Below the pieces are notes generated by a model. That model did no database searches. It was given only the letters and a program-made list of their open reading frames with translations, and had not been told where the DNA came from. From positions 1 to 64,000 of the forward strand of contig MCFE01000433.1 in assembly GCA_002104905.1 (NCBI GenBank): DNA of 64,000 bases, in the 5' to 3' direction. A program made the position numbers and the translations under genes. Below, in pieces: positions 1 to 55,076 of this stretch; within the stretch, counting starts at the first letter, position 1, and every line of letters starts with the position of its first letter. Origin of the DNA: Basidiobolus meristosporus CBS 931.73. Its lineage: Eukaryota; Fungi; Basidiobolomycota.

Positions 1-3000
1 GCTGGTGCTTCTCAAAACGATTGAGTAGTGGTGGATCTTCCGAATATACTGCGTCTTTATCCATCACAACAATACATCGAAATCTCGGGTGTACGTAGCA
101 CATTGGATTGGAATATTCTCCCAAAGCTACCCTGGTGAAATATCTAAGGTCGTCTTTTTTGCCAATAGCTATATAGTTCTGATTCCATAGATCGTACAAG
201 CTTCCTGGAGACAGTGTAGTGGATGTTATATATGCATTTCAATGTAACAGACGGATGTAGGATAACTCACCGTACACTGCTTTTAGATTTGTTAGGACAA
301 CGGGCTGTCCCTGTTCAACGCACATCAAGACCTTATTCAGAATGCTGTACGCATAGTCACTTGTATTATCTTCAGGATATTGGCTACCCCACAACACTAC
401 TGCCTCCATGTCATAACTCTTAAGGTGATAATTCAAAATATCCACCACTGAATTTTTGTCGCCAATTAACATCAGATGTCGTGAATTGGAATCCTGGAGG
501 TTGGCATCGATGATTTCCAATATGTTGTGATCGCTGGTATCTCGCTTTTGGCCATTTGTATGACACATTGCCAATACATTTTCAAATTCATGATAAACTT
601 CTGAATTTCGACAAGGTGCGCCGCCAAAGTTTCGGAGCAACCCATTCTGCATTGCCTCTCGTGACAGCCCTTGCTTACCGAGCGTCTTTACCAATGAGTA
701 ATAGTCACGTAAGCCGTGAAAATTCTTGTTGCTCTGAGACTTTTGGTAGTGAATGAAGGCGTCGGTTAATCTTACAAAGAGCTCCTTGGGCGGTGGGTCG
801 GCATTCCTGTTTGCGGCTTCCTTCTGATAAATTTTGATGCCCACATCTGCCAATTCGATATGATTCATTGAGGGCCGCTGCACTAGCAACGCTCTGGACA
901 GTTTGCTAGGCAGAATTGATACAAATCAGCTATTACTTTGTCGTTGTCAAGACGTTGCATGGGTGAGTACCTGTTATCCAAACGCCAGTTGCTTATACCT
1001 ACTACAGCGATCTTTGGCTTGTTTCTGGGATAGGCAGGTTCAAGTAGGGAGTGTAGCACCTTCAGTGGATTAAAGGGACTAACCTCAGCCAATCCAACTG
1101 GCAATGGATTTCATTAATTCATGTAAACCTACCCTCAACATCAAAGCTTACCCTCGTCCAATAGCACGACTGATTTGATAGGATGTTGCTTCGAGCTCAT
1201 CTCTTGATACTTCGTTGCCTTTTGAAACACTTTTAGTAGACCCGCAGACGTGGACGTAGTGGAACCTTGATATGGTACTATGTACACCTAAAGATTCTCT
1301 GCCGGTTAGAAAAATACAAAGATTCATTGAACTTTTCATTCACTTACTTGAGGCAGTGTGCGAAATATGGGTCGTTAGAGTCAGCACCTCGCAGATTTTG
1401 ATTGATTAACTTCAAGGCTAAGGACTTGGAACTTCCAGGAGCCCCAACTACAAAGATTGGAATGTTGGTTAAAATGCATGCAATAGTAGCGAGCATATTT
1501 TCCAGCAGTGCTTCACTAGGTGCGACATCATCACCACATATCATTCGGTTGAAATAGTCGATGGCATCATGATGAAATATCTCCAGAATCCCCTGAGTAG
1601 TGATTGGATTCTTGAACTTGGCAAATATATTCCCAAGGTTTTCCCGATATTTCCTTCGATCTTCATGACGATACAACCTACACTGATAAGAGACAACTAG
1701 TGCAAGGACCATAGAGCGCTGCGGGATATCGTCTGCTTGCGGATACGAAGCCCTCTTGGTTTTTAGGGCTGCCCTACTTTCAAGACTCTGGCGAAAGAAT
1801 CTTGCAAGTTCGATGGCTCGTTTAATATCTCGTAAGCTGACACTATGCTCCCCATCGATACTACGTATGTGTTCCTGAGACATGCATAGCATTTCTGCAA
1901 ACATTTGGGATTCAGCAAAATTCGACATAGAATGCGTGACCATATGTTGAGTGTATAGGTTTTCATCCAAAGGACTCAATACGCCGTAATCCCATATATA
2001 GTCTAGCAACGCCTCTGGGACGGGATGGACTTGATAGACCAACTTGCTTTGTTCTTCATAAAAATACTCCTTTGATGCGTAAGCATCGGCTGCGTCTGTT
2101 GGGATCTTACGGAGTCGATACGGATTGCAAGCAGCAAAGAATCTTAGATTGTCACTTAGCGATTGCCCATACAGCGAGCGATCGGTAATAATAGACGTTA
2201 ATAGGCCCATATGATTACAAGTATTAATTTCATCGAAGAACACCCACAGGGGGCCTGTTCTCGCAAGGGAATTTGCATTCTCAACAAAAGCTTTGGATTT
2301 CCCCTTCACTAACACCTGCATGGAGATTGAGGATTTGTAATTTAGCCTCCATCATAGAGGCGAGAAAGCCGATTAAGCTGCTCTAAAGTACCTTAAGATA
2401 AGATATTAATGAACCTGTGTGCTATTCTGGAAAACAATACCTTGCCACACCCAGCCTCGCCCCGGATGATAATGGGTATATTTGCATGAATACGCAAGAG
2501 CATTAGGACCATTTTTAGCACATTGTCTGCACTCAAGACATATGGTCTTTCAGGTCTCCATTCCGATAGGTTTGTCCTAACAAGTGATTGTAGCAACGCC
2601 ATCAGATTTTCTTGACTCATCTCATTGTAGTCGGGGAGATGGAACCGCGATCTTCCAAAGTGCTGACTCTCCAGTAGATTAATTACGCTTCTAGGTACTA
2701 AATCCCTGTTCCTATAGAGTGCGCATATCGATCCAGGGCTCTGGCTTAAGAAACTAATGATCAAGTGATTGGAATCACGATCTCTGAGATTTGATCAGCT
2801 GAAGGCGGCGTATTTTTCGTACTTCGCAAGCATCTCGATGCGAATTCTCTAGCAACACCAACTAGTTCCATCAGGAGCGTGACACGAATATCTTTTCGGA
2901 CCACCATAAATGCCAGGTTCTCTATGCTAAAGAAGGGGCTCTCAGTCAGATGTTGCAACTGTTTGCCAAGCACCGATATGAACATGTCAATGAATCGGAA

Positions 3001-6000
3001 TGTTCCAGTGTCTGTGTTACTCGTGAGCAAGCAGTACTTGTTTATTAGCTGCCTGCAGAGGAATCTTCTAGCCTCATATTTTCCTGAAGATTCCGAGTAT
3101 CGATACGTGTTGTTTTCGTTGGCATTGAGGTACTTGCACACAAGCTGGGTATAACTGTTTCTATCGACATCAAAATTACTGATATCAAATGCAACTTGTA
3201 ACTGATTCAGATAGGTTGCGAATGGCAGCATATCTCCAAAATCTGAAGAAAATTCTATGATATCTCTCCTGAAGGCAAGATAAGCGTTTCCGACTCCGAG
3301 CGTATTACACGAGTGGTACGCATTCGAAAGAACAAATGATCTCTTCGAGTTTGATATGGCGATATTAAGTGCAGAGCCCGTTATGAGTTAGAGAGCATTC
3401 CGGAGGTGCTTGATAAGGCTGGGGTATGTCGAGTCCCCGCTGATCATATTGTATGTTTCCTATTTTCACCGCAAATCTGATTGATTCTGGTGGTTTTCCC
3501 TTGACCCGAGTGAGCAGAAGTAACACACGTAACGTTTCGGAAATCTGAGTAAATTCTTTTCATCGACTTGTCAGCTAAGCCGCTGGAACGGACAACCAAC
3601 GAGGCAAACTGATCCAGGATATGGTGATTCTCGTTTTCGGATTGGCAGCATATCAATGCAAGCATGTAATCGCACAGAGTCCGGTGTTCTTGAATCATCT
3701 TGACCAAATAGTATTGGGTCTCACTAGATAGGATATCGACACCTGCAACGCAGAACAGCTTTGAACTGTGCCCTGCTGTTGATGCAAAAAAGGCTCTCGT
3801 TAGGAAACATCGGATCTCTTCTTCTGTAGTGCTGGAGCGGCAAATCATTATTTGCCATGGCTGTGGATACTGTTTACAGTTCACAAACAGCGATATTACG
3901 ATGTTTGGTATTAGGTATCGGCTGGCGCAGGCAACTACGAACAACTTTCCCGGCTGAACAATATCCAGTGTAGACTGTGGCAGTTGCGGGAATGTTGTAT
4001 GGACGGTTTTCGGAAGGTCGTCAAGGACATCCCTCAAACGACTCCCAATATACGAAAGGATAATTGAGTAATTTTCAGCCACGAGGGGTGCATGATCGAA
4101 AGATGGCGATGGCAATACTGCTTTCGGGTGGTAGAATCGAAGTAGATCGTGGCATTTAGTCGGAATATCAGCATCGCCTGGGTAACAATTTGATTCTGGA
4201 TAGAAGTACTGGTAAAAGATCAGGAAATCGCGTGGATTGTAGAATGTCAGGTAATAGTTTTCTCGCTGCGCATCACCGATGATAAACAACAGATCTTGCA
4301 AATCCTCCTTGAGTTCCGTAGCCAGGGCCACCAACTCGGACTTTCTGACAGCTTTCCGGACGAAATTGATATACTTCAGGTGGCCCAGTCGGATCAGCTT
4401 GGTAGCAATTGGTATCATGCCCTGTATAGTATCCACGATCTGCACAAACTCGTGCATGATGTCCGCCATATGCTCCTCGTCTTTTTCAGCTCCCAGCGAT
4501 AAGGACTTCGCTTCTGACATGGCGGACCTGGCATACAGTCTTGCCCTTCCACAAAGATCTTGAAGCTCAGCAAGTGACGTCTGCTTAGATTCTCCGCGGT
4601 AATTCAGCAAAACATCCACCCTTTCTTGGAAGACAAAGTCGTACGTCCCACGCTTAACAGCATTGGCTATTTTATCCTTCGTAGCTTCTCCACGATTTGC
4701 GATATTGTTGTATAGATTTTGAAGGGCAACATTGTTAGCCGCGCAGAGACTAATTCTTGAATGTAGCACCGGATTGTCCCTGGCAATTTCTTGGAGCATA
4801 TTGAGAAGTGGGGCCTCCCTCCAGGTATGGATTGCTTGAAGAACCGGTTTTAGTGATCTTTGGACTTCGATCATGGAAAAGATTGTTTCCTCCTGGATCA
4901 CACGCGCATCATCATAATCATCTACCCCGTTGATTATATTCCGCAAGTCATTCTCGACTACAGCAGTCAGGAATTGAAGAAAATCCTTCCCGGATACCAT
5001 CTCTTGCAACAGTTTCCAAAACCGGCGATCGTAGGAATTGAGGAGTTGCTGAATTCTTCCGAGTGCTTGCTGGTAGCTTCCCAAGGTATGCTCTGGTGAC
5101 TTCAGGTTGGTCAATATATCCTCGGTTGCAACCGATGAGGTGTAGCATTCTGGAGCACCATAGATTGCTTTGATTTCTTGAACCAGCATTACACGAGAGA
5201 TCCAGAGGGGGCGATCAATGAAGGACTTTACGGCAGACAGCATGTCCTTGAAGTCGTCTCTGCTCTCTTCCCTCAGGAATCGCAACTCCTTCTCCGCATC
5301 CTTTACGGGCACTCGTTCCCATACTTGTTCGATTTCTTTCAGGGAGATTTTTTGCCAATCATCATAGAGCTTGGCATGCTGAGAATATGCTTGAATAGCG
5401 GCAGGAAAAAAGGTGGCTGCTATATCCGCAACCAGTAGCATATCTTTTTTTGAGGACATGGATTTTAGTATATTTGTAAAAGTCCCTGCTTCATAGTATT
5501 TGGTCGCTACGTCAGCACACTTCAAGATATGCTTGTAATCGTCCCAGAAACAAGCACTTGAAATAGATGATAGTTTAGAGGCATCTATCGACTTCTCCAT
5601 GTCTTTTAACTGGCACAGCACCTCGCCAGCATCCATAGCATTAGTCGAAACACACACCCCGAGAAATCTGTTTAAGGTGCGCATCCGAGTTCTTGCGAGC
5701 CTACATTCCCTATAAAAATTTGCGAGCTCCTCTGTTGAGAGAGTGCATACGGGGAGATGAAGGATTTCTTGAGCGGCTTTCATAATCGGGATGATGTCGT
5801 GTTGCGGCAGAGCTTGCAGTTGTTCTATAGCCATTACAGATACTTCCCCCTCGGAGATGAGCTCTGTGCCAGTATGTATGATCTGTGCAACCCGCAATAA
5901 ACGGTGATTACCTCGCAACGTTTCACTGGATTTGGATATGCTGAGCAGAGCACGCCAAAAGGCTCCTTCCCTCAGGACCTCAATAAGACTCTTCTCAATC

Positions 6001-8311
6001 TTAGAACTGTGTGAATCGATTGTAATAGGCAGGTCAACGAGTTGAAGAATATCAACTAGCATAGCCTCTGTCAAACTAAACAAGCAAGCAACCTGGTCAA
6101 TGTCCTGTTGTTAAATTTCGGCAAAATGACAAACCAAACCTGTTTGTGACTAGTGGTGTTCTCCTTTCATACAAGGGACATAGTAGAGTAATCACATCAA
6201 GTAGATGGTTTCTCGGAACCAGCGTTAGTTTACGGTGCAGAACTTGTTGGACAGCCAATGCAACGTCGGTTGGGACACTAATGCTCCCCATTGACTGCAC
6301 TGAGGCGAACACTATATCGTAGCTCGTTCGCTGTACGTATCCGTCGAATATCATCAGAACTTCGTGAGTAATCTCCAATCGATCACATAACAGCCAAATC
6401 TGTGCAAGAGTACTATACATACTCCCCACGACATTTGGGTGCTCGTCTGCCTGCCTCGAAGTGAAAGACTTCTCTATGTGATATTGGCATACACGGTTGT
6501 ACCAGTCCGCACACACAAGAGCCAATTCTTTCTGAAGCCCACTACAGCTGCTTCTGGTGACATATAGCAAGGCCACCTCGGGAAACAGCTTGAATATTGC
6601 TTCAGTCTTAGCAGCAGCGATTTTTGGTATGACTTGGAATAGGTGCTGATTCGCTTTGTAAATAGAGCTATGAAACAAAACTCGAGAGACCGTTTCTGAA
6701 CTGATATCTTGGTACGTAGCTGTGGTGATTAACTTCACGAAACGGACCTGCAAGAAACCCAAAATAGATCCTTCTAAGCCACTTGGTATATTTTCCGAGA
6801 ATAACAGGATCTGATCGAATGATGCCTTGCTCACGTGAACTTGAACCTGGAATAGATATCGTTCTTGGGCTGACTGGCAACAGGTATCCAAAACCAATTC
6901 TTCCCAGATTCGCCTTAGAATACAAGGATTGCTACAGAGCTTTGCTAGTGCCTAAAGGAGGTAATTAGTATACGGCGCACTTTTTTAGTGTATCACCAAC
7001 CTCTATCACATCGCCACCCGTAAGTGCGTGACCCTTTAGATACCGGTCTGCATATGCAATTAACTTGTTGAAGTAGTCTTCGTTGGCCTGGTTTTCCTTG
7101 CAGTACTCCAGGGTAGAAAGAAACGATATACCTGGATCGACATCATCAGCGATCGTAAAGAGAATCATCCAGTCCAATGCTCCAACAACTCTAGAGTTGT
7201 GATAGGCGAGAAATTGGCAAACAGTGGGCAGATGGGCAATCAGATAGCTTGGGAATGCCAACTTGTCCATAGTCGTCAGCGCACGAAGCAATTTTCCCGA
7301 ATCAAATTCGATATGCGGTTGGGAGTGAGCCCACTCCATATTCGGACAGATGACCAGGAGAAGGCCCAGAAGGAAATACAGGCCTTCCTCACAGACTTCT
7401 TCGACCCTGCTCACAACAAATTCCATCCCGTTCTTCTTGCCAAGGTTTTTTGCGCTGGAGTCGAATATCTGGTTACAATTAGATATGGCGACCGTGAGCG
7501 AGAGCTGGCCAGATGTGTACGACTCATAGATTCTCGCTATGTAAGGGAGTATATTCTTTGGACTGCGGAAATGAATCCTACTATTTCCATACCATATATC
7601 ATGGGGGTATGGATTTACGCCAAGTTTACGATTGTCTCGCTCTGAGCAACCCTCATAAATTGTATCCTTTCCTAAAATGAACTCTTTGAATCTGTTGCGC
7701 TCTTTGAATGCCACATACTTGTACTCGATAGTCTGCGAGAGATCAATCTCCACTGGGCTTGACTTCCAAAAGCAGCCATCTTGCTTTTGAAGTGGCACTA
7801 CGGGCCTTTTCCATTGACCGAGCTCCTCGATATTTCCTGTCACAAAGATCTTATACTCCTTGTACTCGCGATTCAAGCAAGGGGGCGTCAGCAGATTGAA
7901 GATAACTCTACAGGTGTGTCGGGGATTTTGGCCATCATGAGACTTTTCTGCAGCAGGCGCCCCTGCCAACTGAGCATTTTTGACATTGCTGCTAGATGAA
8001 AACCCGTTTCCAGGTGTATCCACCTCTTCCACAGTTTTGTATCTCTTATCTTCTGCATTCTGGCCTACCCCTACTCCACCCTTCAATACACCCTGATGTT
8101 GAGAAGTCCCGCCAATCTGGCATGGGGTCGACGAGTTGGGTACCAAATCGAACGCTTGTTCCTGATGCTCAATTGATTCATGCAATACACAAGTGGGGGA
8201 GTTTGCTGGTGGACTTTCACTCCTGTCTGTGTTGCTATTCACATCGTGCGGGTGAGAGTGTTTTTTTAGTTTCCAATCTTTGCGGACGGTCTGTTTTCTA
8301 GTGGGCTTCAT
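1..8311 (-). CDS. RNF213: RNF213/mysterin-like giant AAA+ ATPase (putative E3 ligase), 5' ~2600 codons; 3' end lies beyond the left edge; contains several frameshifts in the current sequence
   Basis: Hand-spliced exons (minus strand): 8311-7001, 6951-6140, 6075-2441, 2382-1348, 1287-1152, 1097-971, 905-271, 204-<1, all GT-AG. RNF213-type motifs appear in order: SAHSGQGKT, IIRGEAGCGKS with WVFFDEINT and FFAACNPYR, VVGAPGSSKS with VVLLDEVGLAEVSPFNPLKVLHSLLE and VGISNWRLD, LRDYYSLVK, RHLMLI, GSLYDLWNQNY, PLLNRFEKH. Frame breaks near 3447, 3240-3390, 2778, 2290 and 1364. Confidence 0.9.
7583..7912 (-). other. CBM20 (starch/glycan-binding)-like domain at the N-terminus of the RNF213-like protein
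   Basis: Translation RVIFNL...KIFVTGNIEELGQWK...VPLQKQDGCFWKS...IEYKYV...YEG...DNRKL...HDIW matches the CBM20 pattern (V.G....LG.W, W, EYKY, E...NR). Boundaries are approximate. Confidence 0.75.
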
Positions 8312-10069
8312 ATATTATTGATATGGCTCGCAGGATGCTGAAGCTTGTAGATTCGCTAAATCTAGCGTAAGAGCAGGTAGAAGAGCCTTATATAGGCCAC
8401 GGCATCTCGTATGGAAACAGCAGTCAGATGGAAAGCTGGTTGGATTCTGATTGGCCGTTAGACGGAATACTTCGTTCGTACTACGTCAGTATCCAGGTAG
8501 AGCATGGCATACATGGGATAACTTGATTAGGCCACGCACCGGTTTTGGTGAGTCAAATTCAGATACAACCTGAGATTTGATATATTGGAAACCAGGATGT
8601 AGGTCCTTAAATGGAGACGTTTAAGGTAATCTCCAAGTTTAAAGAACGAAGGTATGAAACGGCGCGGTTCCATTCCGCAGATTACGATTCAGAATTGCGC
8701 TATAGTACTGTCGTTGGTATGGCATGGTGACCGTTGACTGTTTCATCTCTCATTTGGCACAGTTTAATGTTCATTGTGATCATGGAAGTCATTTATCAGA
8801 TCAACCTCCTACTTGATATTATGAGTGGTGCAACACAGCATCTCATAAACGTCAGTATTCCTTGCGTCCAAATTCAGGTAGATTCTTGTTTCTGCACTTC
8901 ATTTCATGTGATAGAGTGGATCTTCCAGTGAGCATGTATCACATGATTGCTCAGATCTGGCTAACCATTTGGGTTTCTATGTTCAGAGAGCACACACTCA
9001 AGCCTTGGACTTGTTGTACACTAATGTAGCATTCCATAGACGTTATAGTTGAGGTTGCGTCCATACCTCTACTGATACTAAAGCCTGACCTTCCGTCATT
9101 CAGTAATTACTGGTTCCATGATTTCCAAATGTCAACTTCATTGCTGGATGTCAAAATCATGTCATGTTTACCTTTGGGCAGATGGTATCGTATCCGTGAA
9201 CTCACTCTAGTGTGAAGAACTAGGCATTTTTAGGATCGCCCAAGTCAGCCCCAACCGAAACTCCTCGTTGTATCATTTCCCTATTTTGCATAGACATGTG
9301 GTAGTTCAATCCCTGGCTGCGACTTTAGCCTTGGAATATTTGTGTGGTTTCTGCGGAGATTCCTACCATGCTCCTATGTTGGCATGATAGTATTCCACCT
9401 CGCCTACTGCCAGAAATACTGGATTTGCCCGGAACTTATGAGAAAGCCAGTGGCCAGGATATTGCGTCTGGAATGGGTAAGATAACAGTTCTCATATAGC
9501 CTTCTAATCGCTTTTCTAATTTACATCACCGCCAGGTCCCAATTCCATTTTTTTCACTGTCAATCAACGAACGCCAAATTTCTCCTCCATAATGCCTGGA
9601 CCATTCCACTCGCACTCGGCCAGCGCCAGAAACGGATCGTGCCATAAATCTCAGGACCTACACCTGCCGCAGGCGCTAAATAATGCCCGATTTACACTGT
9701 TTGCCTAAACTTCGGTGGCGATTTCAATTTGGTGATAAACCCTCTACTCAACCATGGCGCACCCATTCATCTCAATGCCGTATCTCCATCCCCGTTTAAT
9801 CGGCGCTCATCTAGCTAGAGGGTATGATTTGTGTGGCTTTCGAAATGGCCGAAGCTTATCCAATGATGGAGTGGCGTTGAATGTGATTGGAGTGAAATCT
9901 CATTACTTGGTAATAAATGCAGATGATCGAAAACATAATTCCAGCCTAGACCGCCTCCAGATCTTAATAAAGCTATAATTTCAGGTCAATAAAAAGGAGA
10001 CTCGTACCATATCACAGAAAATACGAAGTCTGTTAGCGTTTAGTTGAGTTCACCCATTAGCTCAATAAC

Positions 10070-10950: not shown

Positions 10951-11893
10951 GCATGGTCAAGATAGTGAGCACTAGCTGGCATACATATGAATTATTAAAG
11001 TGTTTCGAGCAATAACTAGCTATATCGCTTTCTAGGCTGATCATTTTCTACCGGTGCCAGTCTGGTTATCAATGGAATAAGCGTACCTTCACTGTCAAAT
11101 CAATGGCATCTCAGTATCGTGCAAATGGTGTATGAATCAACACTCTGGCTCAGCAATTTTGCAGTCCCTAATGCACGTGGGATCATCAGGTATGCACCAT
11201 TTGCTCTTGACGGACGAGGTGGGCAGCCATTTGGCCTTTTTCAAGATAATAGTACAGCGACGTTGACATCTATGCTATCATGATATTTGGAAGTCTCTAC
11301 CATCGACGCCTTGATGCACATTGGATTGGGAACGGAGTTACGAACAGCTTTTCCGCGGATTCGGTGGGAATGGGAGCAAAGGTGCCTTCAGAGATATCCC
11401 CGGTGGCTTGGTGTATACCGTGAACCGAAAGAGGCTTTCAATGAAGATACATCCTGCCTATAGCAATATAGAAAATCACGTTTGCGTCTTTGTACTGCAC
11501 TGTTAGTGGTAGAGAATTATGCGAAAAGTATGCAGTGGTCTGCTGAAATCTTAGTGCTTCATTCTTCACAGCCAAGTTTCAACCAAAGTGCTTGAAATTT
11601 TGTGGCAATCAGAGAGAGCGTCTTTAAGAGATCCGAAACAAACTATGCTGGTTTCCAAATCTGGGATTGAAGGCCACCCTCTAAAGCACATGTATATTGC
11701 ATAAAGCAGCTTCAATCTCTCGATCCAACCATCATCCTCCCAGTGGATCTGCATTTGCTTATATCAGTGTTGACTTGATTGGTGCTAGAAGTGCACTACA
11801 ACAAAATACACGGACACTGTTTCTTCTTCTCTGTCGAACTTGCCTTCGACTTTATGAAGTAACAAGCTCATTAATTGATACGCTGCCGTTAAC

Positions 11894-12873
<980 letters not shown>

Positions 12874-14587
12874 CGCGCCATCCACAACCCCATCTGTTGA
12901 GTGATTAGAGTGATTGCCAGGGCTGTATTCTGTATTGTACGAATCAACGATGCCTCGCCTGTATTCGCCGGAGGCTTCGCTTGAATGCTACTATACTTCA
13001 TTGTGATTAAACCTTTGTTTGGCACCCCCAGTACGTGCAGCCATCTCCGGCCTCCCTTGATGTCCAGGCCATTTCAGTCATATCTTCTACCATTTTTCAT
13101 ATGACAAGTTAGGAACGCATTATCCTGCAAACCCTTCCTCTCTAGTAGTCATTTCCGACCATGTGTTTGTGACTTGAGGGCGACACAAATTCGAGAGTCC
13201 GGCTGGCTGCGAGTGAAAAGTCTAATCGTGCGGAAGGGTGAAGAGATCAATTGGATACTCATTTCTAAATACAGAACAAGTCAACCCGAAGATCCTGATA
13301 GCACCATCGCTTTGCCGAACAATCTACCCACCCCATTGGAGGCTCACCCGGTAGAATAGATGTTACTCAAGCAACGATGGGATCTCCTGTGCAAGAGAAG
13401 CATGTCCATCGACCAACCGCGACTGACAGTTGCACCACAGTCACAAACAAGGCCTCTTTGTGGCATCTACAGGATCAGCAGGATGTATAGATGCAACCCC
13501 ACCAAATTGCATTCCTAAACCGAATTAATGGTAGCTTCAAGCTGGCTGCACTGATGAGACAGAGGTGTGTCATGGATCCCCCGTTCTGGAGGTATAACCG
13601 TAGCAGGTTACGATTAGCGATGCACACGTACTTTCGAGTCTCACATTGGAGTGCAGCACCGCGCATAGCAGGTTCGCTCTCCTAAGACCGGTTGATTAAT
13701 TGATGTAACAAACATGATGCCTCAGCCTCAACAGATCCAAAACCTGAGGAATCCATTGGATACACGATTGTATCCGGGGATCCCAGGAACGCTCACCGTT
13801 ATCTTCAGCCTGCCATAAGCATGAGCAACGATTGGCATAGGGTAGATTGCAGTGAGCCTTCACATGGACGAGAGCCAGGTTGCAGACAATGACAGAGTCC
13901 AGATACTCGTGCATGACCAACGTAAGAGCCGAAACACCGCTGCATGTGCGGTGCAGTGAAGCCTCGCAAGCAATGCATCCCCATACTAATAGTCACATTG
14001 CTCGATCAGATGGGAATCTTCTTGGTTGTGTCATGTGGATCTGAAGACTGCGCGCTAATCTCGATGCATGCAGAACATAGCCATTCATTTGTATCATGAT
14101 ATATTAAGTGCCATGTTACGCACCCAATGTATTCTACCAAAGCCCCTTATCTAATCTGACAAATGCTCATGAGGCCATCAGTATTTACGTAAGCCAGCTG
14201 CATTCCCTACTCAGTCCTGGCCGTGAATGCAACAGTTGGAATATCGGCTCCAACAGCGATCCCCAGTTTGGGCCATCTCTTGCCTAGATCGATTTCTCTC
14301 TGGCTACTCGCCAAGAATCACCATTATCCGATCTGCAGCAGCTATGAAAAGGAAAATCACTGCATCTTACTAAAATGGGCGGTCGGCGACGATCAAGGTA
14401 GAGGCTCAGTGGAGGACTCTGGCCATGGTCGCTCAGGATGGGTGAATATTAAAGCAACTGGCGATGTTTATTCAGCAAAGTGGCCGTGTATTGGCCAGGA
14501 CCTCCGATGAGCATCCAATGATTAGACCACCCAAACGGATACGATATTAGGTGGAAAACAGTGATTAATTCTCGTAGAAAGAGGCTT

Positions 14588-28547: not shown

Positions 28548-30049
28548 TTAGTCTAAAGTTACATCCCGTTCCAATGTGGGGTTTAGGGTGCTGGGGGCCA
28601 CTTCGGGAGTGGGTGTGGGAGGGGGTGAGGCTGAGGTGGAGGTGGAGGTGGAGGGAAAGACATCGGTCCTACCCGAAGCTACGGGTGGCTCGGTAATATC
28701 CCGTTTACACAGCGGGCACGTTCTATTTAGCTTCAGCCACTCATCAACACAATCTATGTGGAAATGGTGGTGACAGTACAGCTGCCTCAATTTCTGGCCA
28801 TCTTCGTACTCAGATAGACAAATGCAACATATCGCATCCTCCTCCCGGATCCTGATCAGCGTCCCGGTGGTGTCCTCCATACACTCCGACTCTCTCCGGA
28901 CGGGAGGGACCCCCGATTTTCGGCAGAGCTTCTTTTTGACTCGGTCGAGGAAACGTTGCGGTGGGTTCGCGTGGCTGGGCCAGGGCTGATCAGACACCAG
29001 TTGGTGGGTGGCGGGAACGTTCTGTCCCATGTTGATAACATGCGGATGTTCCGGGCTGGCCTGTGGGGTTCGTCGGTAGGTCAGAACAGGGATTTTGGAA
29101 ATCACATCCTCCGTAGCACCAGCTCCGGTCACCTCACCGATGCCCAAGGTGCGCATGATCATCAGCACGCAAGGAAGACAAAAGATCACCGCCCCGCAGA
29201 GGAAAACCGGGATTGTGATCACGAAATACCCCAGGATCACCAGGGCCATGGACAAGCCAAACAGGCCGGGGGAGGTTTTCTGGCAGGTCGTCGTGGTGAA
29301 CAATAAATAGTTTCCCACCAGGAAGATGAACGTTCCTACAAGATCCAGCAGGGATTTCCCTCTGCAAAAGAAAGCTGGTCAGTATTCTGGCTTGTTGTGT
29401 GGGACGCCGCTAGCTCCCAAGGAGGCGTGTGTTTACCTGTCAATCCAGTTCAGCAGTATGCTCGACTGGTCATTGGAGCTGTGTCTCTCGGGATGGATGT
29501 GGTAGGCAGCCAACACTGGAGTGGCCAGGAAGATTCTCACGACGTAACAGATAAGATACAGTCGCAGTGGCTTGTCACATTCCTCATGCCGGGTCACTAG
29601 CAGAATCGCTATGATGGTCGCTGACTAATGGAAAAACTTAGCTTCTCTCACAAAAGGGGATTTGCCGCTTGCTTTACCTGGACGACGAAAGACATGAGCG
29701 ATAGGAGTAGCAGCAGTCTGGAGGTACGGGAGGCATTCCGATAGTACTCTAGTAGGTAACTTAGCCAATTCCGCCTAGCCAGGGTCACGGTACGGATGGA
29801 AGTGGTCCTGATTGAGCCAGAACGTGCGGTAGAGAGGTATATGGGTTGAGGGGTATGGGTATTTTCATGCTGGATATTCATCGAGATTGAGGAACTGGAG
29901 GGGTTGGAGCTTCGCGTGGAAAGTGCAGCGTTCAAGTGCCCTTCGGTTGTCGGCTCATCAGGTGTATTGCTAGAAACGGAAAGGGCTTCTATGGCCGTCT
30001 GGGGCGGGCCCTTCTCCGTACACGTGTGGACTGTGCCCGGCGAACTCAT
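28548..30049 (-). CDS. Multi-pass transmembrane RING-H2 E3 ubiquitin ligase
   Basis: Exons 30049-29678, 29624-29437, 29361-28548 (457 aa). TM block with [27 protein letters not shown] and FCLPC, then [11 protein letters not shown] and the RING-H2 [42 protein letters not shown]. Confidence 0.9.
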
Positions 30050-54191: not shown

Positions 54192-55076
54192 TTACTCTTC
54201 ATAATGCTCCAGACACATTTCTCTCAGTGGATGTCTTCTTGTATGAACATACTGTGTATTGATAAGTATCTTAACTATTTTACCTATTCTGCTGTTTTCT
54301 CCTATATATGACTTTCCTCTGTATTTACCTGCCAATATGCTGAATCTCTTCAGATATCCAAATGCGTGCTCTACCCTTACTCTGAAATGATTAAATATCT
54401 CATTGTAGAGCTTCTGCTTCCTGCTAAGCACACCATTCCTTGGCTTCCTATAAGCTGTAATACATCCTAATCTCTGACAATCCTCTCCTATATAGGCCAA
54501 GTCTGCCATACATTTCTCCCCTCTACTGAATTCAGGATGATTCTCTACCCAGAGTGCTTTGTCATGCCTACTTCCAGCAAATGGCCCACTAAACCAGATG
54601 ATGTTACCCTCAATGTCAGACAGTGCTTGAAACTTCACACAGTGTGCCTTGTACTTGCCAGAATAAAAGTGCCTCTGCCCTCTAGAAGGTCTGTTAATCC
54701 TCACTGGGAAGGTATCCAAAATACTCCTGATATGGAACCTGTTGCTGAACACTCTGGGATATGGAAGTCTAATGGAGCTTCTGAACCTAGTATTCCAAGC
54801 TTGCTCTAAGTCATTCATACCCTCTGCAAGGTGGTTCTCCATTGCTGTCAGCTGGGAATGAAAGCTTCTAGGACTTTTGTTGCCATGGATGGTGGGATGA
54901 AACCTTGTAGGGCAATAGTTCTTGTAATAGCAGAGAAGCTTAACAAGGGATCTCCTTGAGTAGATTGGGGTTGATGGTCCACAGTACTTGGAATAGATCT
55001 CCTCCAGTGTGTCAAAAGGAAATCCAGTGGTAGTGATGGGATTGATGAGAAAAGACCATTCAGATGAGTAAGTCAT
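54192..55076 (-). CDS. PIF/Harbinger-type (DDE_Tnp_4) transposase, 294 aa, intact
   Basis: HTH-like LVKLLCYYKNY, ILDTFPV (D), FYSGKYKAH, GSRHDKAL (D), MADLAYIG (D), RVRVEHAFGYLKRFSIL (E). Confidence 0.9.
   Translation of the reverse strand: MTYSSEWSFLINPITTTGFPFDTLEEIYSKYCGPSTPIYSRRSLVKLLCYYKNYCPTRFHPTIHGNKSPRSFHSQLTAMENHLAEGMNDLEQAWNTRFRSSIRLPYPRVFSNRFHIRSILDTFPVRINRPSRGQRHFYSGKYKAHCVKFQALSDIEGNIIWFSGPFAGSRHDKALWVENHPEFSRGEKCMADLAYIGEDCQRLGCITAYRKPRNGVLSRKQKLYNEIFNHFRVRVEHAFGYLKRFSILAGKYRGKSYIGENSRIGKIVKILINTQYVHTRRHPLREMCLEHYEE

Follow-up and report, generated by a model that had tools for sequence, protein, structure and literature searches.

The human gene RNF213 (mysterin) is linked to moyamoya disease, and its product, an unusual E3 ubiquitin ligase of the immune system, ubiquitylates bacterial lipopolysaccharide. 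Judging from the animal proteins, an intact family member would be a giant E3 built around a dynein-like ring of six AAA units, with an N-terminal CBM20 domain and a stalk mounted on it. AAA3 and AAA4 would hydrolyze ATP, and ubiquitin would be transferred by an E3 shell at the C-terminus that contains an RZ zinc finger. The RING of animal RNF213 is said, in work of 2021 by Otten et al., to be dispensable for lipopolysaccharide ubiquitylation. The family is known, and its fungal sequences are already public as uncharacterized ‘RZ-type domain-containing’ or ‘E3 ubiquitin-protein ligase’ entries; in the literature that we searched, no papers on fungal RNF213 were found. Here we describe a member from the fungus Basidiobolus meristosporus CBS 931.73, located in a stretch of 64,000 nucleotides (nt) that comprises positions 1 to 64,000 of the forward strand of contig MCFE01000433.1 (hereafter, the window). 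The window contains the 5′ 60% of an RNF213 family gene, and the locus is a newly recognized, probably dead, member of the family.

Set beside human and mouse RNF213 (PDB 8S24, 6TAX, and 7OIK), the Basidiobolus gene has its parts in the identical order (CBM20, stalk, and dynein-like AAA core) and shares the catalytic Walker A/B pairs in AAA3 and AAA4, with the RZ finger and the C-terminal domain located on a second contig that continues the gene. The mammalian proteins measure ~5,200 residues, whereas the fungal protein has roughly 4,200-4,700; they also possess a RING, and none was found in the fungal clade. Unlike its mammalian counterparts, moreover, the window copy is broken. Our interpretation, to which we assign a probability of about 70%, is that we are dealing with a recently inactivated pseudogene family, i.e., a real but recently dead gene, and not with a working immune system in this strain. 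We arrive at this because the window copy combines a deletion in AAA2 and a stop codon with two frameshifts and an out-of-phase splice donor, and because the continuation contig is frameshifted too.

The gene is multi-exon and lies on the minus strand, running from an ATG at 8311 off position 1 of the window. All long open segments between 8311 and 2 are found on this strand and switch frame at short intervals, as expected of a gene with short introns. The first exon extends from the ATG to ~7001, and the complete exon model amounts to ~7,800 coding bases (~2,600 codons). In tblastn comparisons, the Ambispora (4,670 amino acids, aa) and Endogone (4,685 aa) proteins are collinear with the window from about aa 57/113 to 2698/2793, and with relatives as a guide, four clean in-phase introns of 54-66 nt could be placed (Table 1). 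Over the aligned part, the long exon shows no difference from K493DRAFT_410326, an annotated protein of the same strain with coordinates on MCFE01000433.1 (75,870 bp) that equal those of the window exactly. Position 1 is therefore the end of the contig, and the adjacent upstream window, in which an earlier note on this DNA (made from the sequence alone) had proposed to look for RING and RZ modules, does not exist.

Homology to the solved human and mouse structures is direct in the exon 1344-2321, which matches nine RNF213 chains (phmmer, E 2e-29) over a region reaching from the Walker B of AAA3 to the Walker A of AAA4. The 879-codon exon matches fungal relatives with E values of 1e-132 to 1e-66 and amphioxus and mollusc proteins with E values of 5e-57 to 1e-32. 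Single-sequence searches of the PDB with this exon and with exon 1 gave no match, and a profile was needed for the stalk: built from the 879-aa exon and nine relatives, it matches residues 1062-1908 of mouse RNF213 (E 6e-29). All five nucleotide-binding motifs can be located on the minus strand, including the SGQGKT P-loop, which is invariant in eight fungal relatives. Regarding the AAA3 Walker A motif, a reading as GEAGCGK-V was rejected, as the relatives reveal a 58-nt intron whose removal gives GEAGCGKS.

The N-terminal domain is of the CBM20 type. Pfam PF00686 (CBM_20) matches residues 152-206 of the first exon (E 2.2e-7, 31 bits, with a cutoff of 23.3), and a CBM20-like domain is recognizable at the N-terminus of 11 fungal relatives. 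An AlphaFold (AF2) model, for which an alignment of eleven relatives served as input, reached a predicted local distance difference test score (pLDDT) of 83. Searched with Foldseek, it retrieved the CBM20 domains of STBD1, laforin, fungal glucoamylase, and CGTase (best E 7.9e-6) and, lower down the list, mouse RNF213. The modeled domain would thus share the beta-sandwich fold of the STBD1, laforin, and glucoamylase domains (Foldseek E 8e-6 to 4e-5), and it has kept their G..LG.W, W.S.P, and YKY motifs; judging by the alignment, it seems to have another residue in place of the second site-1 tryptophan of glucoamylase. The contexts differ, in that the window domain is joined to an ATPase/E3 giant and the others belong to glycogen/starch enzymes. 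In human RNF213 the CBM20 comprises aa 378-515, with strong positive selection around it, and point mutants of its predicted sugar site were recruited to Salmonella, Listeria, and Toxoplasma as before (PMC11549300).

In its anatomy, the gene is what the earlier note had described, namely more than 2600 codons of an RNF213-type giant with a CBM20-type domain, a helical stalk-like region, and an AAA core, in that order, with the pairs GEAGCGKS/FFDEIN and GAPGSSKS/LLDEVG and the SGQGKT P-loop. The comparison with RNF213 that it had suggested is borne out at the level of sequence and, for the CBM20 domain, of fold. What that first reading overlooked, besides the end of the contig at position 1, is a set of frame lesions that no intron can repair.

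As assembled, the window copy is broken in at least four places (lesions a-d, Table 1). No single continuous spliceable frame was obtained when GT-AG, GC-AG, and very short or long introns were tried at each of them. At lesion a, the frame closes at the TGA after SGQGKTTRINQICGENRK, and the next homologous residues (RSFVLSN..) are in a different frame; enumeration gave no GT-AG or GC-AG intron that would link the two. The missing ~40 residues are common to all eight relatives and include the conserved LHLNI..VNLFLFELL block and the AAA2 core strand. The AAA2 nucleotide-binding module is consequently incomplete, its P-loop being kept, its core strand lost, and its frame closed by the stop. Lesion b leaves 2 nt between ..DQISEIV and SNHLIISF.., where the relatives have four residues (QWDD), and offers no space for an intron. 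Lesion c is a +1 frameshift between ..GEIQSF and VENANS.., seen by tblastn as a frame switch without a gap; at this site, the open reading frame (ORF) of the second copy is in frame, and read-derived contigs are one base shorter at 2292. At lesion d, finally, the GTAAGT donor (1347-1342) is in phase 2 and the acceptor before VYIVPYQGS requires phase 0, so that splicing leads to an immediate stop. The five residues AHCLK fit the spacing in the relatives; the edge of the exon thus seems to lack one base. Lesions a (~40 residues) and b (~10 nt of a conserved QW motif) are not errors of the base-caller type.

The state of the public annotation is in line with decay, since it managed only two fragments of this gene, one of 585 aa (5459-3444) and one of 584 aa (2321-239). 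These two separate models, together with the long open segments that persist, could also be taken to mean that the locus has become a truncated but expressed neo-gene with separate products, e.g., a CBM20-stalk part and an AAA3-AAA4 part. However, the models start at an internal Met and contain odd introns that interrupt conserved sequence, and RNA runs of the organism, sought among the public data, were not found. Going by the RNF213 structures, an AAA ring would moreover be unable to form from such fragments, and we regard a neo-gene as very improbable.

The pseudogene interpretation also draws on the remainder of the gene, which is found on MCFE01001067.1 (18,197 bp; hereafter, the second contig). 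The last 22 bases of the gene strand (window 1-22) equal positions 8595-8616 of this contig exactly, and K493DRAFT_309277, a 94-97% identical fragment, is located on it. Beyond the overlap, the second contig stays collinear with the relatives until no more than ~25 residues remain before their C-terminus. It carries an RZ-type zinc finger at 11605-11865 (Pfam PF20173, E 1.9e-10, 40.7 bits), and its positions 12549-13661 match the C-terminal domain of human RNF213 (residues 4957-5191 in construct numbering, E 8e-5); no RING was found in its ORFs scanned with Pfam. The earlier note had reasoned that its proposal would fall if the C-terminal part held no E3 module (RING or RZ): the RZ finger and the C-terminal domain do exist on the overlapping contig, but the RING does not turn up. 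The RZ-bearing E3 module is present in this genome, yet it is joined in the assembly to a second, more degraded copy.

The degradation of this second copy is extensive. Its match with the window spans 7011-1318 only, the N-terminus being absent, and it has suffered deletions of ~490, 113, 454, and ~1,300 bases, next to thirteen deletions of 2-23 bases in the long exon. Its AAA4 Walker A, moreover, is destroyed by a loss of 22 bases. In its C-terminal half, the frame shifts at three places between aligned blocks that lie 0-6 bases apart, and next to a minisatellite it lacks ~90 residues that the relatives have. Decay was likewise evident in every further copy seen. The window copy and the second copy differ by 22 synonymous and 29 non-synonymous changes (pS 0.027, pN 0.010), and their ratio of 0.38 indicates that constraint was seemingly lost only recently.

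Two features of the second contig can be mentioned in passing. The thirteen short deletions fall within 2.6 kb (4307-7132, aligned with window 6243-3405) that show ~1.4% substitutions, an unusually high ratio of deletions to substitutions, and lesion b of the window resembles the outcome of the same short-deletion process. The minisatellite-like repeat (9631-9925) lies inside the gene, and the peptides AVIRDQS.. and KLWSLITAN.. recur in it on two strands.

Public DNA reads were compared over window 1-6000, and most of the contigs obtained belong to the other copy. In two public DNA runs of one sample, contigs show the indels and joints of the second contig again, and the assembly is therefore accurate there. 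Read depth is ~400-450x on the stretches shared by the copies and ~180-290x on those unique to the window copy. Over window 1-1345, which is lacking from the second contig, the reads yield a third variant, which differs by ~1% substitutions and lacks 57 nt (757-815), with gaps of 10 and 20 nt in addition, so there must be at least three copies or alleles. The genome has at least two or three near-identical copies, and among them the window copy is the one in the best condition. As an observation in its own right, MCFE01000433.1 ends 22 nt past the point where the two gene copies re-converge to identity. With the contig ending at a repeat boundary, the second contig downstream of 8617 may partly be a collapse of two loci.

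Near-identical copies also provide the ground for the most serious objection. The gene could be functional, the four breaks being assembly or consensus artifacts that arose from collapsing two or three copies, in which case it would encode an intact CBM20-AAA-RZ protein of ~4,200 residues. Several observations weigh against our interpretation and for this one. At lesions c and d, the change amounts to one base in a short homopolymer run, with the other copy in frame at c, and three of the four lesions lie at or beside indel differences with the second copy, exactly where a mixed-copy consensus could err. The contig breaks precisely at the re-convergence of the copies; the read-derived contigs stem mostly from the other copy, and the window bases at the lesion sites are not displayed in them. 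None of the catalytic motifs is damaged, the 879-codon exon and the four clean introns are likewise preserved, and pN/pS stays below 1. In addition, Basidiobolus may be polyploid, so an intact allele could hide in a collapsed assembly. Nonetheless, the loss of ~40 residues from AAA2 and of ~10 nt at 2774 does not fit homopolymer errors, and the indels of the second copy are confirmed by independent runs. The C-terminal continuation likewise changes frame without introns, and the read variants over 1-1345 carry, besides the 57-nt deletion, the 10- and 20-nt gaps, which are not multiples of three. Taking both sides together, we consider a functional gene unlikely, though worth keeping in mind, and we infer that the lesions are genuine rather than assembly errors.

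With at least four frame-breaking lesions, the deletion of the AAA2 core, and the decay of all further copies, a working system in this strain is unlikely. The animal-like pattern-recognition and ubiquitylation system that the earlier note suggested is therefore improbable in this strain. As the locus is probably dead, it is also a poor experimental candidate.

To place the gene among its relatives, we searched proteins exhaustively with the AAA3-4 exon, which gave 2,184 matches at E <=0.001 and 323 at E <=1e-30. After the two fragments from Basidiobolus itself, the best named matches come from Glomeromycotina (Diversispora, Gigaspora, Rhizophagus, Racocetra, Cetraspora, Ambispora, and Funneliformis) and Endogonales (Endogone and Jimgerdemannia), many of them 4,100-4,700 aa long. 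They are followed by invertebrates (amphioxus, scallop, abalone, clam, and nemertean) and environmental proteins, and family members also occur in a chrysophyte, Amoebophrya, and Orpinomyces. A maximum-likelihood tree was computed for 137 sequences, with supports from the Shimodaira-Hasegawa-like approximate likelihood ratio test (SH-aLRT). In this tree, the window sequence falls into a set of 28 rows (100% SH-aLRT) in which every named row is from Glomeromycotina or Endogonales. A separate set of 69 rows (97% SH-aLRT) contains all five named animal proteins plus 64 unnamed rows. The window sequence sits on a long end branch (0.8, with a median of 0.39).

This position bears on the question of whether the DNA is foreign, be it as animal or protist contamination or as a recent horizontal transfer of animal RNF213. 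RNF213 is best known from animals and the family is also represented in stramenopiles and alveolates, which would make such an origin conceivable. Yet the fully supported clade unites the gene with Glomeromycotina and Endogonales and not with animals, its introns measure 54-66 nt, and it resides on a 75.9-kb Basidiobolus contig with further called genes and a depth of ~200x or more in those DNA runs that contain it; a foreign origin is hardly tenable.

The closest relatives, from Glomeromycotina and Endogonales, include Ambispora leptoticha CAG8481554.1, Endogone RUS21593.1, Jimgerdemannia RUS33191.1, and Gigaspora margarita KAF0488046.1. Proteins of these two lineages share 42-50% identity with the Basidiobolus gene over AAA3-4, form one clade with it, and have the same CBM20-AAA-RZ layout. 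In the annotation they appear as uninterrupted proteins of 4,100-4,700 aa, and arbuscular mycorrhizal (AM) fungi have them in multiple copies, whereas the Basidiobolus gene is interrupted and long-branched. The RNF213-like proteins of invertebrates (Branchiostoma, Argopecten, Haliotis, and Mercenaria) are homologous in stalk and AAA core but constitute a separate clade. As a side observation, the AM fungi Gigaspora, Cetraspora, Dentiscutata, Funneliformis, Rhizophagus, and Glomus each hold many distinct fragments and paralogs of the family, which suggests a lineage-specific expansion.

At the C-terminal end, Pfam detects RZ fingers in the Ambispora, Endogone, Cetraspora, and Jimgerdemannia proteins (E 7e-16 to 3e-13). 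RING-family Pfam models matched neither the four full-length fungal relatives nor, at E values up to 5, the 900 residues preceding the RZ finger in five relatives. Regular-expression patterns for RING and RZ were dropped as evidence, being too strict and having overlooked RZ fingers that Pfam does detect. The fungal RZ finger reads C-x-C-G-Y and the human one C-x2-G-H, and in the Basidiobolus finger the loop is six residues shorter than in Gigaspora. In the two animal relatives scanned (Branchiostoma and Argopecten, 4,700-4,900 aa), Pfam found no CBM20, RZ, or RING, and the E3 end of the family thus seems to vary more than the ATPase core. By these profile matches, a coherent fungal clade keeps the CBM20, stalk, AAA, RZ, and C-terminal domains without a recognizable RING.

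The clade matters more widely than the locus that led to it, and we regard this RING-less CBM20-AAA-RZ group as the more interesting by-product. A coherent fungal clade possesses the full CBM20-stalk-AAA-RZ layout, and this layout would hence be older than animals; the RING can be absent while the RZ finger stays. By way of ATP binding and hydrolysis, AAA3 and AAA4 of an intact fungal member may govern a ubiquitin transfer that depends on the RZ finger, and the CBM20 and the stalk are a candidate target-binding surface; these putative functions are carried over from the animal protein by homology.

Glomeromycotina and Endogonales are lineages with Mollicutes-related or Burkholderia-related endobacteria. 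The coincidence of clade membership with endobacterium-bearing lineages is suggestive but fully confounded with phylogeny, and a link to endobacteria would be putative. One could go further and propose that the CBM20-AAA-RZ machine predates animals, is RING-less and multi-copy in the endobacteria-housing Glomeromycotina and Endogonales, and serves there as a putative cell-autonomous sensor and ubiquitin ligase directed at endobacteria or other intruders, with Basidiobolus either losing it or keeping a hidden intact allele. As a whole, we deem this scenario speculative and rather improbable. For the ancestral function, Rhizophagus or Gigaspora would be suitable test beds, as these fungi can be cultured both in the presence of endobacteria and in their absence.

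Table 1. Features of the RNF213-like gene in the window, listed in the direction of the gene (positions are those of the window)
Feature	Position	Strand	Basis
RNF213-family gene, N-terminal ~2,600 codons	1..8311	minus	ORF segments; tblastn collinearity with relatives; contig match
CBM20-type carbohydrate-binding domain	7547..7924 (Pfam core 7694-7858)	minus	Pfam, AF2 model, Foldseek
Stalk/N-arm up to the AAA2 P-loop, uninterrupted 879-codon exon	3447..6083	minus	homologs and profile
SGQGKT P-loop (AAA2 position)	3509-3492	minus	read from sequence; invariant in eight fungal relatives
Lesion a: TGA stop 3444-3446, ~40 AAA2-core residues gone	3342..3446	minus	intron enumeration; alignment with eight relatives
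Lesion b: frameshifting loss of ~10 nt	2774..2775	minus	comparison with relatives
AAA3 Walker A GEAGCGK, then 58-nt GT..AG intron, then Ser codon	2461-2441, intron 2440-2383, Ser 2382-2380	minus	
Lesion c: extra A, AAA versus AA in the second copy	2292..2294	minus	tblastn; ORF of the second contig; read-derived contigs
AAA3 Walker B FFDEIN	2240-2223	minus	
AAA4 Walker A GAPGSSKS	1445-1422	minus	
Lesion d: 60-nt intron, donor out of phase	1288..1347	minus	intron/relative comparison
AAA4 Walker B, LLDE, then 54-nt intron, then VG	1163-1152, intron 1151-1098, 1097-1092	minus	
Two well-formed introns flanking the post-AAA4 exons	970-906 (65 nt), 270-205 (66 nt)	minus	relative-guided intron model

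Elsewhere in the window, an ORF for a small RING-H2 protein lies at 28548-29318 on the minus strand (E 1e-14); it is unrelated to, and no part of, the RNF213-like gene. A transposase ORF of the PIF/Harbinger type (DDE_Tnp_4, E 1e-23) occupies positions 54192-55076, also on the minus strand.

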